From Thalia democratica (lineage: Eukaryota): 64,000 nucleotides of DNA. A program made the position numbers and the translations under genes. The DNA lies in the NCBI GenBank assembly GCA_965202585.1, contig OZ241834.1, forward strand, positions 31,124,001-31,188,000, read 5' to 3'. The stretch's first letter is position 1. Each line of letters opens with the position of its first letter. Below the pieces are notes generated by a model. The model saw only the letters and a program-made list of their open reading frames with translations, was not told where the DNA came from and searched no databases. Positions 1 through 10,000 of the stretch are shown one piece after another.

Positions 1-839
1 TTCAGTTATAAAAAAATAGAGTACGTTTGCTGTTTGGTAACATTAAAAAGCTATATAAACTATAAATAAAGTTGTACTGTTCAAGTGTTTATCTTTATTA
101 TCATCTAACTTAAAAATGCTTAAAGAAAAACTTCTGCTGACTGGTAAATAAGCACTTATATTTAGAAATATATTCATATAAACAGAGTTTAGAACAGCTA
201 AAATTTTGTTTCAACTAAAAGAATAAAAAAGGTATATAAAACTTATGAAAAACGTAACTGTAAAGCTATTTTGAATGCAACAACTATCAGCAGTTTTTAA
301 ACTATAAAAGTTGTAATAAAACAACGCTAATAATAAAAATCTATTAAATCAAATCAAGGTAACAAACTTGCCTGTATATTTATTTGTTGTATTACCAGTA
401 TATAACGGTTATTTATAATTTTAAGTTGTGTAGATTTTTTTAACTTTAGACATGTTGCATAAAAGTTAAAAATAAAGTACTCGTTGTTAAGAGTTTTATC
501 AAAAAAAATATCAAATTGTAGCTTAAAAAATTGTCATGTGAAGAAATAAATAGTGTTTTTTTTTTTTAATATAAGTTTAGTACATAGTTAAAGCGATTTT
601 GTTAGACGCATAAAATGTTATTGAGCAAAAATAGTTCAGAGAGAACGTTGAGAAATGTTTAAGTTCTAAATTATATGTTTTGATAAAAATCTTTGTCGTA
701 GCTAACTAAAAATAACGAATTTAGCTATGTTCTAAATTTAAACTACAAAGGTACTGAGAAAAAAAAGTTTGACTCAGACAAAAAGGCGCTTAGGAGTGTC
801 TACAAACAAAGCATTCATCAAAATCACATAACAGCTAAC

Positions 840-1023
840 CTAAAACAGACGCCATAATTTCTATTTTGTCTTCTCCATAACTGTTTGTTGCGGTAACATC
901 ATATTTCCCTCCGTCATCGACTGCAACCGACTTCAAATTGAGCTTCACCGTCGAGTTCTCCCTGACAAATTCAACGTTGTCGCTGCCGACGACGCTGGTA
1001 ATGAATTTGTCGTCTCCAGCGCT
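840..1023 (-). CDS. ttn: Exon 63 (I/A-junction-type Ig second half)
   Basis: VKLNLKSVAVDDGGKYDVTATNSYGEDKIEIMASVL then G|GTTAG. Confidence 0.87.
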
Positions 1024-4000
1024 CTGTGAATATGACAGGAAGGCTGTGATAATTGGTGACATTTGAGCTAACACCCGAGCGCGACCACTTGCTCGGCTTT
1101 CAGCGTTTGATTAATTGACTTGAAAGCCAAATTTGAACGCTGAACCTTTTGATTAACATTTAGCGCGCGCTTAGCTTCAGCTCGAGTTTTATTTGTGCAG
1201 CAGTTTTACTTATGCTCGAGTTGTATAACACCATCACTTCTTATGTAAATTATAGTACAGATTTATTTTTAAAGTTTTTGAATAACTTATAAAAATTAAA
1301 AGTCTAAACTAAAATAAAGAAAATTAAAAACATTCAAAACAACAAACTGTCTTTTTCCAACTGAACACGGGATCGGGAAACCCCAAATAAGCAACCACGA
1401 TCGAGTAGGGCTTGGAAGTCTTCATGACGACCTGGTCACTATCGTCAACCAATGTCAGAAGTTCCATCTTGGGCGGGCACGGAAAGCCGACCACGCATGT
1501 GGACTGGCAGGTCCTGTTCAACCGGGCCGTGTACCTACCCAGGTCGCCAGCACCAGCCTTGTTCACCACCAAGCTGTGCGTTTTTCCCTGTTGGCATGTA
1601 AAAATGATAAAATGAGAGGTACAAGTCGAAAGCAATCAAAAAATCAAAAAATGAAAATATTAAAAAGTGTGTTTTGCATTTAAATCAACTAAAAAGCGTA
1701 AATGTACAAACGGCTATGAAATTAACGTTATATATATAAAATAAAAACACAACGTTTTTTTTTTTTGGTTTTACCTAACTAATTGTTGTCCATTTGTACC
1801 TCACATTACACAAGTAGGTAAATCGATTACTTAAACATCTATTAATAGTGTTAAATTGAAAAGTATTAAATTTAACAGTATTAAAACATTCAATTAAGCC
1901 AGCAAACCTCAGCCGAGCACATGAGCTGGTGTTTCTCGCTGTTGCTTATTTCCTTGTCATTCAAAAGCCACTGGATTTTGTCGAGCTGGCTGATTTCGCA
2001 GGTCAGTTTGAAGGAACTTTTCAGCTTGACTTCGAGCTGGTCGGGAAGGACTTTGGTGAAGGTGGTCGATTTGCTCGAGGACCTTTTGCGCAAGACGTGC
2101 AGAGTTGTCCTGGATGAAACACGGTCGATTTTGCACTCGTATATGCCTGCATCGGATATCTAAAAAAAAAAAAGTTTATTAGGTTGATAGGGTGTTTTCA
2201 TATTATTTTTACAAAAAATTGAGTTTTTATGAAGTTTAAGAACTGTTAAAAAATTAGGCCACATGGGGTGTGAAAAAATTAATCAATTTTTATATAAGGC
2301 CTGTCTGTCAATTCACTACAGATATATATATATATATATATATATAAAATAAGGTTAATGTTTAAACTTAAACTCTTTCAACTGAGCCCACTTGAAGGGC
2401 TTTTAAATAATTTATTCAAATTATTATATATTATTATATATATATATATATATATAACTAATACATACTTTTTCTGTTTAGCTCAAAACATTTGTTTATG
2501 ATTTACTTTGTTTACTTTTAAAATGAGCTACTGAGTAAAAATTGTATTTTTGAATTATCTTTTTCTAAGCTGGGTTAAAACCTTGTGAGGTAAATACTTA
2601 TTTAATTTTATAAAAAGCCAATGTAACAAGTAAAAAGTAAAGTCTAAAAATAATATTTCTTTTGACCTCTGTATAAAATTTTAACCTGTATTTATTACGG
2701 CTATCATCAATAAAGTTGAGATGTTCTCGCCATTAATATGTGCTCTGTATGCAATTAAAAACAAAAAAAATTTGCCACAGAAATTTATATTTTTGTCACC
2801 AACTTTTACGTTTTTAATGATTAGCTGAAGCACGCCTTTATCTTCTTTTGTTGAAAATCTTTCGTTTTGTGCAACTTTCTTGTTGTCGTGAAACCACGTC
2901 ACAAACGACTTGTTCGGATACGTCACTTCACAGGTCATTATGACGTCATCGCCCTGATTCGACTTGACGGGCTTCAGCTCTTTGGTGAAGCTGACTTTTT
3001 CATCTGAATTTTTATAAATAATTTTTAAAAATCAGTTTAAAACACAAAACTCAAAACACAACCTGATCTCGAGTAAGATCTCGAGTATGTTCGCCGCAAC
3101 ATTTTCTTTTACTAATTGCCTTTATTACTGTTTGAACCTTACCATACTTACAATAAACACAAAATTTACAATTGACTTATTTTTAAAAAATGATTCTGTA
3201 AAAAAGAAGGAAAATAATCAATTCCAAAAATCTAGCGTTTAAAAAAAAAACTAATTCGTGTGCTCTTTCTTACTTAAACATCAGTGATTAAAAATAAAAC
3301 TGCAGTGCATATGCTTGAGTGAATAAGTGATGTAAAAAACACTTCTTGTTGCCTTCTTACACAAATCCCTAAGGAGCTTCAAAACAAATCCCCGATAATT
3401 TCGTCAGCTTACACTTTCTAGCGAGTGAGCGCGATTGAAACTACAAAGCGCGTCATTAAAAATTGTTATGTAATTAGCGTGGTTTTAATTAGTGTTTGTT
3501 TATTCAGAAAGAAATACTTTCGACAAAGCTTAAGGATAACGACGGTAAGTAGAACAAAACAGTATAGTTGATTACGAGATATGTGATAGAAAAAAAAATG
3601 TTCAAGTGATATAATTAGGGTAGTTTTCAAGTTTTTATTAGTAGGTAGAACATTCTTATTTATTTTCAATAAATTCCATTTTATAATACAGAAGAATAGT
3701 AAATAGTGTTATAAAACGTTTTCTATGGTTGATTTTAAAAAGCAAACAATTAAGAAGCATAATCTAGTTTAATTAACGATAACTTTACTCTGAAGTTTTA
3801 ATTTACGAACATTGCCAAATACTTTATTTATAAAACCTTATGCTTTTACACAAGTATACAATATAGATGGCTTTTTTGCATTTTAAAATAAGAATATATA
3901 AAATTTATGTTAAGCTTTATTTAAATATTTAAATAGTTATTAATAGTACGTTTAAGAAACATAATTTGAATTTTATTTTGTATAAACAAAAAGGAACAAC

Positions 4001-7000
4001 TTAATTATATTACATAAAGTCAGTAACACACTCACTTAAAAGTTAATAATTTAATTTTTTTTATAGCTTTTATAAAAACAGAAATAGAAGTATATGTGCT
4101 ACTTAATAGGTTATTTATAGTAACTTTTTATTCATGCAAAAGATTTTCACTTTAATTTACCGCACTTATTAAAATAATAAAGACAGAAATTATCAATTGT
4201 AAAGTTGTACCTTTATTGTACAAGGTATTTTAATAAAATGCATGAGTTGTAAATTATTATAGTTGCTATTGATAAGTTAAATCAAATAAATAAATTTTAA
4301 ATATATTAAATTAGTAAAAAAGGCATAATGTTTTAAGCGTAAATATTCATTTATTTTTTTTTAATTTATTTCTGTTAGCATTCTGTAATTTAACATCTGT
4401 TTAATACAAAAACAGTCTCAATATTTTTTAGTTAAGCTAAGTAGTTTAAAATTACTTTGGAAAGTTCAGTCGTTAACTTTTCAATCAGTCTTCAAAGCAT
4501 TTGAAAAATTAAAAAGGTTAATGTTAATTAGTTTTCAACAAACTTATGTTTCTTAAAACTTGGTAAATTTTCTTTCTTAAAGTTTTATTAAGTAAACTTA
4601 AAGTCTTTTGTAATTTTTATAAAAATATTTATATAATTAAATTAGTGATTTCTTTTAGTCCTAGTATTTAATATTTATAAGGTTGTAATCACAATTCCAA
4701 CTACGATAGAAAAAAAAGTATAATATATATCTTATATATATATATATATAATATAATCTTTAAAATTTGTTTTTGCATAAATTATTTTCGTAACAATCTA
4801 TACAAACCATATTCTGTGTTTACCAAAATCAACTTCTTGAATAGAACAAAACTACTACAAATAAATACTATAAAACCTATTTTTTTGTTAAGGTAGACAA
4901 CATAAGGTGTACAAATAAAAACTTTTTGAAAAAAGTTTTCGGAGTGTTTTTTTTGAATGGTATTTATTGTAACAGGATAAAAAACTCCTGATACTTTAAA
5001 ACTTTCTTGTAATCATAGTCTTACTTTTTGATAAAAGTGACTGTTTTTTATTACTTCATAGACTATTTGAAAGGTTTTTCACTTTTTTTTAATCAACTAA
5101 GCTTTACTTTTAGAAAAGTTTTATTTATTGATTTAAATTATCTTTTTAGAAATTAAAGAAATGAATATTACTAAATAAGAAAAAAAATAATGTCAAATAA
5201 AATGTGTCTCAAATACTTAAATATATTCAATTAACAAAATGAAAAACATTAGATTCCCTATGGCACTTTTTTAACTTAAAGGAATCTTAAATTCTAATAG
5301 AATTCATGTTTTGTGAGTTTAATAAAACTGTGATAACTTGATTAAGTTAATACTTTGTTGAACCTTTTTTAAACCAATTCAATTAAATAAAAATCGTAAA
5401 AATATAATTAAAAAAATTTTTCATACAGAGTTAGTGTATTACGAAAAGTATAGTTAAGCATATTAAAATTTTAACACAAAAGTTTATAAAACCGCATGCT
5501 AAAGGCTTAAATTAAAATTAAACTCGTAGACTTAATATTTGTTTCGATATTTAAAAGCATAAACAAGTTTAAAAAAATAGTTTAACATAAATAAAAAATA
5601 AGTATTTCATTATCTAAAAAGTACAACGTATCAAAAAAGTAAACGCCAACATATATTTTACTTAGATATAAAACTTCTATTTGCTGTAAATCACTTTGAC
5701 TTTAAACTTTTTTAACAAAGTATTTTAATACGAATATTTACCTAAAAGTGCTTTGTCAAAGATGTGATTAATTTTAATTTTAAATTTAGATATAATATAT
5801 TTAATTTTTCCTCTTTTTTTAAAGCTATATTCTGATATTTTTGAAAAACTTTAGTAAACTGTATCATAGTTAAATACAATTTAAACAATAAATTATCAAT
5901 TGAAAGATATAAAGTCTTCACCTAATAGTTTAGTGTGAACACACTATTATTATTTTTTCAATTCTGCACATAGCTTTAGAAAAGTTTTAAAATCACTAAC
6001 GTATAAAACAAAAGCATTGATTAAAATGTGGTAGTGTTTAAAAGTCGTTTTAAAAAACTTATTTGGTAGTCAAACAAACGGTTATTATTATAGAGTATTA
6101 TTACAATCGTTAAGTTTAGTAAATATTTATGTTTTAAACGCTTAATTTCTTTTATGGGATTTTTTAAATTATTAGCTTGTAATTACTTTTAAACTTTAGC
6201 ATAATATCGATAGTTATATTTAGATCAGAAGGTCTGATATATAAAATTAAAAAAATTTCATTGAAAATGTTGCTCGCAGGGTGTATAGAAAAAACTTTTC
6301 GTTGGCCGCAGTTATTTAAAGTACTTTTAATGATCAATAAAAAATACAATTTCTAAACAACAATGTGATTTTTAATGCAAAAAAAAGTCACTAGTAATTG
6401 ATAATTGTTTCAGTAATAGCCTACCTGTAAGTTTTTATAATATAAGTTATAAACGTTATAAAAGTATTTTAATAGCTGTAAGTTATATCACAGGCCTCAG
6501 TTCGCGAATCACTGATTTAATATCACAAAACTGTATATTAATCAACCTTAGTTTGTTAGTTTTAACCACATGTTATTTATATTTACAAATGAAAATATAA
6601 TAAAGAAAAAGAATTATATTGAACTCAACTACTGATTTTTTTTACATATTATAGTAAAACTACTTTGGCGTTTGAAAAAAAAAATAGCTAGCAAATTTGC
6701 TAATAACTTCTCACTTTAAGTTTTTTTAATTGACATCTAAACGTTCAAAAAGGTATCAACTGTTTTAATAACTTAGTCTTTACCTATTCCCTTAATTAAA
6801 TTTAGTAGAAGCAGTTAGTAAATATTAAAGTAGTTTAGTAAACAGCATATGAATAATCTGTTGTTTATTTTGGGACTTTTTGCTCCAAGCACGCCACGAT
6901 CAGTTTGATAAAAAGAAAGTTTATTTTTTGAAAATTTAGTTGAAAAACTGCTAGCATAACCTAGAGGTCAGTGGCCTTTATAACTTGATAGATATGTTTA

Positions 7001-10000
7001 AACCACAGGTCTTTTAATAAGAAATGTGTAAACTTTACGAGAAACGCTACTCGCGGGCACTGTATAAAAAGATCATTCGCAAGCACACTTATCTAAAATA
7101 ATTAAACTTTTGCGGTAATCAATAGAAATGAATAGTTTTAAATAAGTAAAGTTATAAATTATTTTATCACTATAGCACTAGTAATAAGTAGTTAAAAGTT
7201 CAAAAGCCTAAAAGGAAGTTTTTACCTTAAAAACCTTTTTAATATTTTAAATGTGTCTATTACGTGTGATAAAAACACACTTCGGACCAAATTTTGTCCG
7301 CGGGTCGTAGTATGCCAATCACCAGCATATTCACTAATTATTTTTTCTATTTAGAGACTTTTGTTTCGTTGTTTTAATGTTCGAAAATACTCGTTTGGCA
7401 AGAAGGCTTTGAATTTGTGTAGTGTAGTTTTCAAAAGTTAAAAGTTAGTATTTTAAATATAACTCTATGTTAAAGTTACATTATTTAATTACATTAAATA
7501 AAAGAATACTTTGACAAGTTCAAGTATTGTGTTTGTAATTTTTTTGAAATATGTGAGTCTATAAATAAGTTTTGAATAATCTTTAAAATTTTGTTGTATA
7601 TATCATAGTACACCTATTTTTAAAATATGCTATTACTTTCATAGAATGCAAACAGTTTAGAGAAACTTTAAGTATAAAAATTTTTAAGTAATTTTTTGGT
7701 CCAGCTACAGTTTAGTATTAAAAGTACAATGTTGACTTAGTTTAATTCAATAACAAATATGCTTGTGTACTTAAACTAAGCTCCAAACAAGTTTTACTTA
7801 AGTTAGTTTTATGTTATTTAGCAGAACATGCATTTAAACTTATCTTAAACCTTTACAACGATTAAGTTTTTATATAAATGTACATACTAATTAAACTTAC
7901 ATACGAATACGAATCTAGAAACAAAAACTATTAAAATTTTCTGTCGAGTTATTTAAACTTGTAAGTTAGCTGATATCATGAAGTAAATGTCAATTCTTAT
8001 ACCAATATATAAAATTTTGACAGTTTGTGATTTAATACTGAAAGTTTTTTTAGACTTTAAACCTATTTACATTCATTTTTTTAAAGATAAAAATTTGGTT
8101 AATAAAATAATTTATTTGGCATTAAAGTTTGGCATAGCTTTTATCGGAATTCATTCCGCCTACTTGCATACTGAATTACTTTTATAGGTATTATAAATAT
8201 TTTTTTACAATAAACAGAATAAAACAAAATTGATAATAAAAAAGTATGTGCTAAACGAGTGTAGTAAAAAATCACAAAAAAGTGCAACACTAGGTGGTGT
8301 AATTGAGAAATTATTACCGACCAATCACGCGCAAGAACGCAGAACACGTGACTTCTCCGAACTCGTTTGCCGCCGTCACTGAATATTCCCCGAAATCGCT
8401 GAAATAAATAAATTAGTTTCAATATATTCTAATAAAAAATGTTGAACTTAAAACATTTGACTGTTACCTGTGCTTGACTTTTTTGATTTCTAGGTAAGGT
8501 TTGGTTAGTGAATTTCCTATTTTGATTCCTACTTTTTCTGACAATTCTTTACCGTCCTTGTACCAAGTTATGTTTTTGGAGTTTGCGTGTTTCAACAAGC
8601 ATTTTAAACGAACCTGTGAAAAGGTTTAAAGTTTAAATTTGTTCGTGATTAGGTATTGATCAATGTTAATGTATTCAAAATACAAATTTCATAAACTAAT
8701 AAAAAACTAAAATCTTTTACAATTTTTAGTTGTTTCTCCTTTAAAGATCAATAATAGGTTTATACTAAAAAGTTTTAGTTACTTTATCGAAAATATAACA
8801 GATATAACAGACAAAAAAACTAAGTTTTTTTTTATTCTTACTTTATCTCCGTGTTTTACTTCCGCTGCAGACAGCTCTTTTGTGAATATCGGTGCTTCTA
8901 AAAGGTAGTCATCTACAAAAAGATTTTGTTAGAGTTAACAGTTAATGATTTATTTTCGACTTGCAGTGTGTTTTTTGCATAACAAGCAAGTGCTTATTTG
9001 TGGATCTAATTTTACGCTACTTATGAATGTTTGTGGATAAGATGATAGTAATTTTATTAAATGCCCTTTGCAATTTTAAATTGTGCTTTACATTATTAAA
9101 TGCTAAATAAACTGAAACAATTAAGAAAATCACATTAAAAACATTTTTCACACAAAGTACGTATTCATAAGGCATAACAGAACAGTTATACTTGTTTTAG
9201 TATCTAACCAAAACAAGATTTATCAAAAAACATCATTAATGAAGTAAATTTTCAACTTTTTTGCTAAAATAAAACAACAAACAATTTCGTGAGTACTTGC
9301 AACTACAGTTATAATGTTTATGTGCTAAAAATCTAAGTGCAAGTTTTTGTGCGGCTGCTACTTTAAAAACCAGTGAAATGTGCACTTTCAACTCGAAAAA
9401 CCAGTGTTTTTTTTCAAGTGAGTTCACCCTTTTTAGTAAAACCTTCAATTTCATCTTTCATTTGTTTTCTCCACGTATCGTCATCGCTACTGTTTGAAAT
9501 TTTCCGTTTGTTGGTCGGAACTTCCTTTTCCTCTGTCTGCACTTCCCTATCAACTAGATTCTGCGAGGGTTTATCAACGAACTGGTCGTGCTCACTGCTC
9601 ACCACCAACGTCGCTCTGCACTGAGTGCTCCCCTTCTCGTTTGAAGCCAGAACCTTGTATACTCCTGAGCTCGAACTCATGCTGCTGCTTATTATCAGGC
9701 ATCCCGCTTCGTTTCCATCGCTGATCACCTCGATCTTGTCCTTCATCGGCTCGACGGGCTCGTTGTTCCTGAACCACTGAACGCTCGTTTCGCAGCTGCT
9801 CGGCTTGAGGGTGTAGACGAAGTGCGCGGGCTGGCCCTCCGCAACGGAGCAATCCGAGATTGTCTTCAGAAATTCCGGAGGCTCGGTTTGAAAGCTTTTG
9901 TTATCATCCGCAGCTTTTTTGATGGTTTTTATTTCTTCCCTGATCACGGTCTTGATCTTGTCCGACCAGTTCTCGGTGAGCGCCATTTTGTACAGCGGCT

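Follow-up and report, generated by a model that had tools for sequence, protein, structure and literature searches.

A conserved candidate start exon with a Cronos-like position in the largest titin intron of Thalia democratica

In a 64,000-nt stretch of the Thalia democratica genome (contig OZ241834.1, positions 31,124,001 to 31,188,000; hereafter the window), a titin gene lies on the minus strand, and a 40-nt open reading frame (ORF) within its largest intron, of 5.3 kb, is likely to be a real start exon. It probably gives the thick-filament part of titin a start of its own, comparable to that of Cronos, the vertebrate titin isoform that is produced from an internal promoter in the distal I-band (PMC4720518). 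In this paper we describe the layout of this micro-exon, its substitutions in two related species, its position relative to the domains of titin, and the conserved non-coding sequence that lies upstream of it. A Cronos-like start had been proposed in an initial annotation of the window from the ORF, a GC-richer patch and a MEF2-consensus site. That central idea is supported by the conservation reported below and not by the features on which the annotation relied: an apparently selected start exon joined to the following exon, a comparable position and a conserved block upstream all stand, and the MEF2 site carries no weight.

The exons in question are given below in window coordinates; a slash in a sequence marks a splice point.

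8322-8398, minus strand: exon 59, the end of an immunoglobulin (Ig) domain, with the donor ATT G/GTCGGT
3063-3102, minus strand: coding part of the candidate start micro-exon, 13 codons from the ATG and the first base of an Asp codon
3004-3062, minus strand: mini-intron of 59 nt, which ends in TTCAG and has a branch-point-like CTGAT in its poorly conserved part
2810-3003, minus strand: exon 60, which begins in phase 1 and encodes the initial two thirds of an I-set Ig domain

The ATG at 3102-3100 opens the peptide MLRRTYSRSYSRS, whose coding sequence holds a perfect 12-nt tandem duplication and is followed by a G at 3063 and the donor GTTGTG. Exon 60 starts AT GAA AAA at 3003, and the G at 3063 joined to AT gives the Asp codon; its own donor at 2810 is AAC/GTAAAA, and the reading continues in ISDAGIYEC at 2159. 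The micro-ORF, the G/GT, the 59-nt intron and the junction with exon 60 are thus all present on the minus strand where the initial annotation had put them. Exon 59 ends (8322, ATT G/GT) in the same phase as the micro-exon, so exons 59 and 60 are phase-compatible with each other. A simple in-frame cassette spliced from exon 59 is nevertheless ruled out, because an in-frame TAA lies at 3111-3109, upstream of the ATG, and the AG sites at 3105, 3111 and 3119 score at only the 0th to 11th percentile of the 46 called acceptors of the gene. This bears out the annotation, which had found no such cassette with the nearby AGs. Percentiles here and below are relative to 46 called sites of the gene, and these site statistics rest on a rough exon chain that we built for the window, in which some small exons are wrong.

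Exon 60 matches positions 2-62 of the 90 in the Pfam I-set profile (E = 1.4e-9); another I-set domain begins in exon 61, and a third is completed in exon 63. The first Fn3 domain lies approximately 150 nt before the window start and is preceded by three Ig domains, the first of which is opened by exon 60. The Pfam order Ig, Ig, Ig, Fn3 agrees with the initial annotation, which had placed exon 60 two Ig domains before an Ig that resembles the last one ahead of the first Fn3 of vertebrate titin.

To find relatives, the open frame that surrounds exon 60 was used as a homology query, which returned two short proteins on marine metagenome contigs. One of them, P0001, begins with the same peptide as the micro-exon. 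The contigs carry the orthologous genomic locus from two related species, L001/L002 (952 nt) and, from Tara Oceans, L003 (2244 nt), with nucleotide identities in exon 60 of 89% to L001 and 96% to L003. The initial annotation had suggested looking for the micro-ORF in related species, and it is kept in both. Its peptide is identical at 14 of 14 residues in the window, L001 and L003, and the ATG, its AAAATG context and the donor G/GTTGTG are kept in all three, as is an in-frame stop three to five codons upstream of the ATG. L001 is without any AG just upstream of the ATG, so in that species the micro-exon cannot be an internal cassette. A second homology search with P0001 as the query gave no further relatives. 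Searches of metagenome contigs returned nothing, in a collection that does not include the metatranscriptome of the contig L005 (described below), and hence have no bearing on RNA.

Six substitution events separate the three species within the 40-nt ORF, and all six are silent in the frame of the ATG (CGG>CGA, CGA>AGA, ACA>ACG, TAC>TAT and, twice, TCG>TCA). The same six changes nearly all replace residues in the two other sense frames. Under mutation models with a transition bias of 1 to 4 and a CpG excess of 1 to 10, a random change in the ORF is silent with a probability of 0.28-0.32, and the probability that six of six would be silent is 5e-4 to 1e-3 across the models. Because the frame had been set in the initial annotation before any relative was seen, no penalty for multiple testing applies. 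As a control we used the other gap-free 39-nt segments of the same conserved block with at least five variable sites each, and none of the 128 was silent; only the register of the micro-ORF is. Six protein-changing CpG transitions are possible in the ORF and none of them was used, while both of the silent ones occurred. Coding on the opposite strand was considered and rejected: five of the six changes would fit the antisense frame that shares third positions, but that frame is interrupted by a TAA.

The length of the mini-intron is 59 nt in the window, 57 nt in L001 and 63 nt in L003. Since these indels do not come in threes, no frame constraint acts on the sequence that separates the two coding segments. 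Only in L001 does it happen to be open, and for that reason P0001 was called as a gene product. An unspliced small ORF was also rejected, as its read-through stop is not kept in L001. Silent-only change followed by a frame-free spacer is the signature expected of a short coding exon and then an intron.

The ORF pattern alone is not beyond chance. An in-phase ORF from an ATG to a GT, of at least 13 codons and within 200 nt of the acceptor, occurs in 9 of 34 long introns of the same gene, so the raw pattern of the micro-ORF does not exceed the background; it is the conservation in relatives that lifts the finding above chance. The donor of the micro-exon, GTTGTG, is at the 26th percentile of real donors, similar to the donors of exons 59 and 60. 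Titin donors are unusually degenerate across the minus-strand gene of the window, with GTTTGT-type donors common and position +3 being T, G or A in 15, 14 and 15 of 46 sites, and against this background the GTTGTG donor is unremarkable.

The sequence upstream of the ATG and into the mini-intron is as well conserved as the exon itself. Across a block of approximately 490 nt (3525-3034), identity to L001 is 86-93%, on a par with the 89% of exon 60, while the intron downstream of exon 60 becomes unalignable in L001 within about 30 nt. Upstream of the ATG the conserved sequence is divided as follows.

3261-3525, minus strand: block A, non-coding, 86-93% identity to L001
3197-3273, minus strand: poorly conserved stretch of 77 nt, 63-67% identity with indels, against 86-93% on either side
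3103-3196, minus strand: block B, immediately upstream of the ATG, putative 5' leader, 86% identity to L001 and 91-92% to L003

Indels that are not multiples of three, together with stops, mark blocks A and B as non-coding. Read from exon 59, block B is interrupted by a stop in L003 and shifts out of frame in L001. A double cassette, in which exon 59 would be followed by 44 nt (3195-3152) and 43 nt (3105-3063), is in frame in the window only and was ruled out by the stop in L003 and by a frameshift and the lack of an AG in L001. The block is present as a single copy in the 802-Mb genome, and a repeat or mobile element was rejected on that ground. It has no meaningful Rfam match at E <= 1 and no excess of RNA folding stability (z = +1.2 and +0.5), and with these results a structured non-coding RNA in the intron, such as a small nucleolar RNA (snoRNA) or a microRNA (miRNA), was rejected as well. 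The only repeat in the 4.2-kb spacer of the intron is a dispersed element of approximately 200 nt at about 6250-6490, of which there are at least 40 copies, 70-85% identical, genome-wide.

Block A, in which invariant runs reach 27 nt and the motifs TGACG and TAATTA each occur twice, is a candidate promoter, outron or non-coding first exon. The 77-nt stretch that follows is bracketed exactly by TAA/GTAAGA (3273) and by an acceptor at 3197/3196, in the manner of a small intron; the donor reads GTAAAA in L001, and donor and acceptor fall at the 39th and 28th percentiles of real sites. The stretch may be a small intron or the end of an outron. Its acceptor-like sequence CTTTTTTACAG/, with the AG at 3197-3196, is invariant in the three species, as are two tandem consensus donors, ATT/GTAAGT (3151) and ATG/GTAAGG (3142), and an upstream ORF of six codons at 3145-3125 is kept in all three. 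On the minus strand of 3125-3197, the invariant acceptor and the tandem donors bracket a non-coding 'exon' of 44 or 53 nt; candidate explanations for these splice-like signals are a spliced-leader acceptor, a terminating cassette, or U1 sites in the leader. Spliced-leader acceptors are common in tunicates. Transcription may start in or near block B, block A may be a non-coding first exon, or 3196/3195 may be a spliced-leader acceptor. An E-box, CANNTG, at 3174-3169 (minus strand) is kept in the three species with a different middle in each (CAATTG, CAAGTG and CATTTG), and is only a lead. Conservation at 86-92% (L001 to L003) continues from block B across the micro-ORF and 29 nt into the mini-intron (3196-3034). 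These 29 nt (3062-3034) are a conserved GU-rich stretch, and the last 30 nt before the exon 60 acceptor are 64% identical to L001.

The GC-richer patch that the initial annotation had reported at 3240-3470 is present, with a GC content of 0.31-0.35 across 3151-3600 as compared to 0.19-0.25 across the remaining intron; the conserved block extends beyond the reported limits, from 3525 to 3034, and also contains splice-like signals. The MEF2 consensus (YTAWWWWTAR), which the annotation had used as evidence for a promoter, occurs 72 times in the window and approximately 15 times in the 5.3-kb intron alone. The copy TTAAAAATAA is present at 3288-3297 and is broken in the relative L003. With no conserved site above this background, the MEF2 match was rejected as evidence for a muscle promoter.

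The upstream end of the same intron was compared to L005, a 2271-nt JGI metatranscriptome contig of a relative, which was found by a search with the 801-nt exon 10228-9428 and encodes the protein P0152 (338 aa). L005 is without the three introns between exons 10228-9428, 8897-8842, 8613-8468 and 8398-8322, and must therefore be derived from RNA. At the donor of exon 59 it is unspliced and reads GGT CGG TAA, with the stop at 8316-8314, so that P0152 ends in LRVIGR three residues past a complete Ig domain. The stop stands three codons past the donor in both the window species and L005.

8111-8321, minus strand: read-through and 3' untranslated region (3'UTR)-like stretch, ending at AATAAA (8116-8111)

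Over 208 aligned bases past the donor (8321-8111) the window is 86% identical to L005, and identity falls to 55-57% directly after the shared AATAAA. The stretch after exon 59 looks like a 3'UTR with its poly(A) signal, and polyadenylation would be expected at about 8095. Of the sampled words of 2700-8650, 5-6% occur in two marine metatranscriptome runs, X1 and X2, which are absent among the runs listed for the exon-rich region 830-3110, where exon 60 alone should have sufficed. Their word content gives weak support to a message with exons 58-59 and the tail but without exons 60-63. The 5.3-kb 'intron' could thus separate two messages, either in addition to being an intron or instead of it, which puts the wording 'internal' promoter in doubt.

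Some further observations concern the neighborhood of these exons. The in-frame donor of exon 59, GTCGGT, is weak (24th percentile), and a better-scoring donor, GTAATA, lies 4 nt downstream of it (8317-8322, minus strand); if it were used, the frame would shift and a stop would arise at the junction with exon 60. Positions 1-810 of L005 match the window at approximately 11060-10229 (minus strand), the intron upstream of exon 10228-9428, with a patch of 83-88% identity at about 10590-10350. In this part, L005 has either kept an intron or marks a further internal start, from which a short message with two Ig domains would encode P0152. At 10.5-20 kb before the window start, again on the minus strand, L007/L008 form a single open frame of more than 3172 codons, in which Fn3/Ig super-repeats are interrupted by long acidic linkers and which extends beyond the DNA examined.

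The explanation that we consider likely is that selection has maintained the 40-nt ORF as a true first coding exon, with its own start, and that an upstream message ends in the same intron. Translation would begin at the ATG at 3102 and add 13 unique residues, rich in Arg, Ser and Tyr. The micro-exon would be spliced at G/GT (3063/3062) over the intron of approximately 60 nt onto the Ig exon at 3003, and the GU-rich run just past the donor probably aids its recognition. The message would encode the last three Ig domains of the I-band and then the Fn3/Ig thick-filament part of tunicate titin, with its promoter and 5' leader carried by the conserved non-coding DNA at 3525-3103. The same intron probably holds the 3' end of an upstream Z-disc/I-band message, with the stop past exon 59 and the AATAAA at 8116-8111. 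In that case two transcription units would meet at this site, and splicing of exon 59 to exon 60 into a fused giant message could also occur. A transcription start, splicing from 3063 to 3003, translation and polyadenylation are what we infer from these features.

Several points weigh against this explanation. The coding test consists of only 13 codons, six changes and two relatives, one of them close, and in-phase ORFs of this kind are, as described above, common by chance in the gene. At 57-63 nt the mini-intron is shorter than the shortest confident introns called here (the 68-112 nt class). Consensus donors and an upstream ATG in the leader are odd for a plain 5' untranslated region. No cDNA-derived protein with exon 60 was found in the collections searched (local BLAST, returned proteins), where the output was dominated by multi-Ig proteins and only P0002 was a close relative. 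For the upstream end, L005 still carries 800 nt or more of the long intron before its first exon and extends 155 nt beyond the AATAAA, with no poly(A) tail seen, so its read-through may come from unspliced or partly spliced pre-mRNA, and stops and AATAAA are frequent in sequence that is 80% A+T.

The alternative closest to the preferred explanation, and one that we regard as possible but doubtful, shares with it the claim of a start exon and differs only on the upstream end: exon 59 would normally be spliced to exon 60 in one giant message, no upstream message would end in the 5.3-kb intron, and the micro-exon would be a minor alternative first exon served by an internal promoter, as in Cronos proper. 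Exons 59 and 60 agree with this in phase, and both end or start at Ig boundaries; the exon 59 donor is kept in L005, and L005 has signs of incomplete splicing at its other end too. The weakness of that donor, the stop three codons beyond it in both species, the halt of conservation past exon 59 exactly at the AATAAA, and the apparent lack of exons 60-63 in X1 and X2 all speak for a message that ends there.

The remaining alternatives do without a new protein start. Titin could be one continuous gene here and the conserved block a cis-regulatory element in its intron, acting as a muscle enhancer or in the control of splicing for the long intron and exon 60, with an accidental ORF in it and a silent pattern that is due to coincidence or to constraint at the level of DNA or RNA. 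Approximately 490 nt are conserved, most of them clearly non-coding, and identity is just as high where the mini-intron begins (its first 29 nt). Motifs that are GU-rich or resemble splice sites point to binding of splicing factors, in-phase ORFs arise readily by chance, and no RNA contig covers 3004-3525. Such an element would not, however, account for six silent changes out of six (a probability of about 1e-3, with 0 of 128 control segments silent), for six protein-changing CpG transitions left unused when both silent ones occurred, or for an ATG, an upstream stop and a phase-matched G/GT that are kept in all three species, and we judge it unlikely. More improbable still is that the splice signals delimit alternative poison or terminating cassettes (3195-3152 or 3195-3143, possibly with the micro-exon) that are spliced from exon 59. 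The invariance of the acceptor and of the tandem GTAAGT and GTAAGG in three species would fit, and in our reading of the alignment inclusion from exon 59 leads to an early stop in all three. The cassette sequence itself has a frameshift and substitutions with no coding pattern, and this alternative would leave unexplained why the ATG frame has silent changes only and why L001 has no AG before the micro-exon.

If the preferred explanation is correct, with a start exon and an upstream 3' end in one intron, a gene model that merges all phase-compatible Ig exons into a single gene may be wrong here. The locus also allows one to ask whether tunicate titin is one giant protein or several, which bears on the titin 'ruler' in tunicate muscle, and whether an internal start is ancestral to Olfactores. 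To our knowledge, Cronos has been described in vertebrates only, and how it arose is unexplained.

In vertebrates, Cronos begins in the intron that precedes an Ig exon and has 7 to 12 unique residues before that exon (Zou et al. 2015, PMC4720518), 7 in zebrafish and 12 in mouse and human (PMC4720518). The tunicate site resembles it in that the putative start lies, by position, in an intron before an Ig exon and shortly before the A-band part, in the short unique N-terminus before an Ig domain (13 residues here), in a product that would be the C-terminal thick-filament part of titin, and in conservation among relatives. It differs in that the unique residues stand on a separate micro-exon followed by an intron of approximately 60 nt, whereas those of Cronos are a 5' extension of the Ig exon, and in that an upstream message may end in the same intron. 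The likeness is one of position and layout, read from the tunicate DNA.

The upstream end of the intron can be set beside Novex-3, a vertebrate titin isoform in which an alternative 3' terminal exon gives a protein of the Z-disc and I-band only. The candidate stop and poly(A) signal would likewise end a Z-disc/I-band-only product within the titin locus. Here read-through of a donor adds two residues and then a stop, with no dedicated large exon, and the putative polyadenylation site is at the junction of I-band and A-band, whereas Novex-3 ends in the proximal I-band.

In other invertebrates the two parts are encoded by split titin-like genes, sallimus/I-connectin and projectin in arthropods and ttn-1 and twitchin in C. 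elegans, and chordate titin is thought to combine the separate I-band and A-band genes of invertebrates. Our comparison with the split genes draws partly on remarks in PMC4720518 and PMC12198301. As in those genes, I-band-type and A-band-type parts would come from separate messages, with the break near the first Fn3 domain. Unlike them, the two units here lie side by side in one locus, with the same orientation and compatible phases, so that a fused message could still be made. We tentatively raise the possibility, which we consider doubtful at present, that chordate titin arose by an ancestral fusion whose seam is still preserved in the 5.3-kb 'intron'. The intron would then hold an old I-connectin-like 3' end and an old projectin-like promoter and start exon (blocks A and B and the micro-exon), Novex-3 and Cronos would be remnants of the same two-gene ancestry, and a Cronos-type start would predate the vertebrates.

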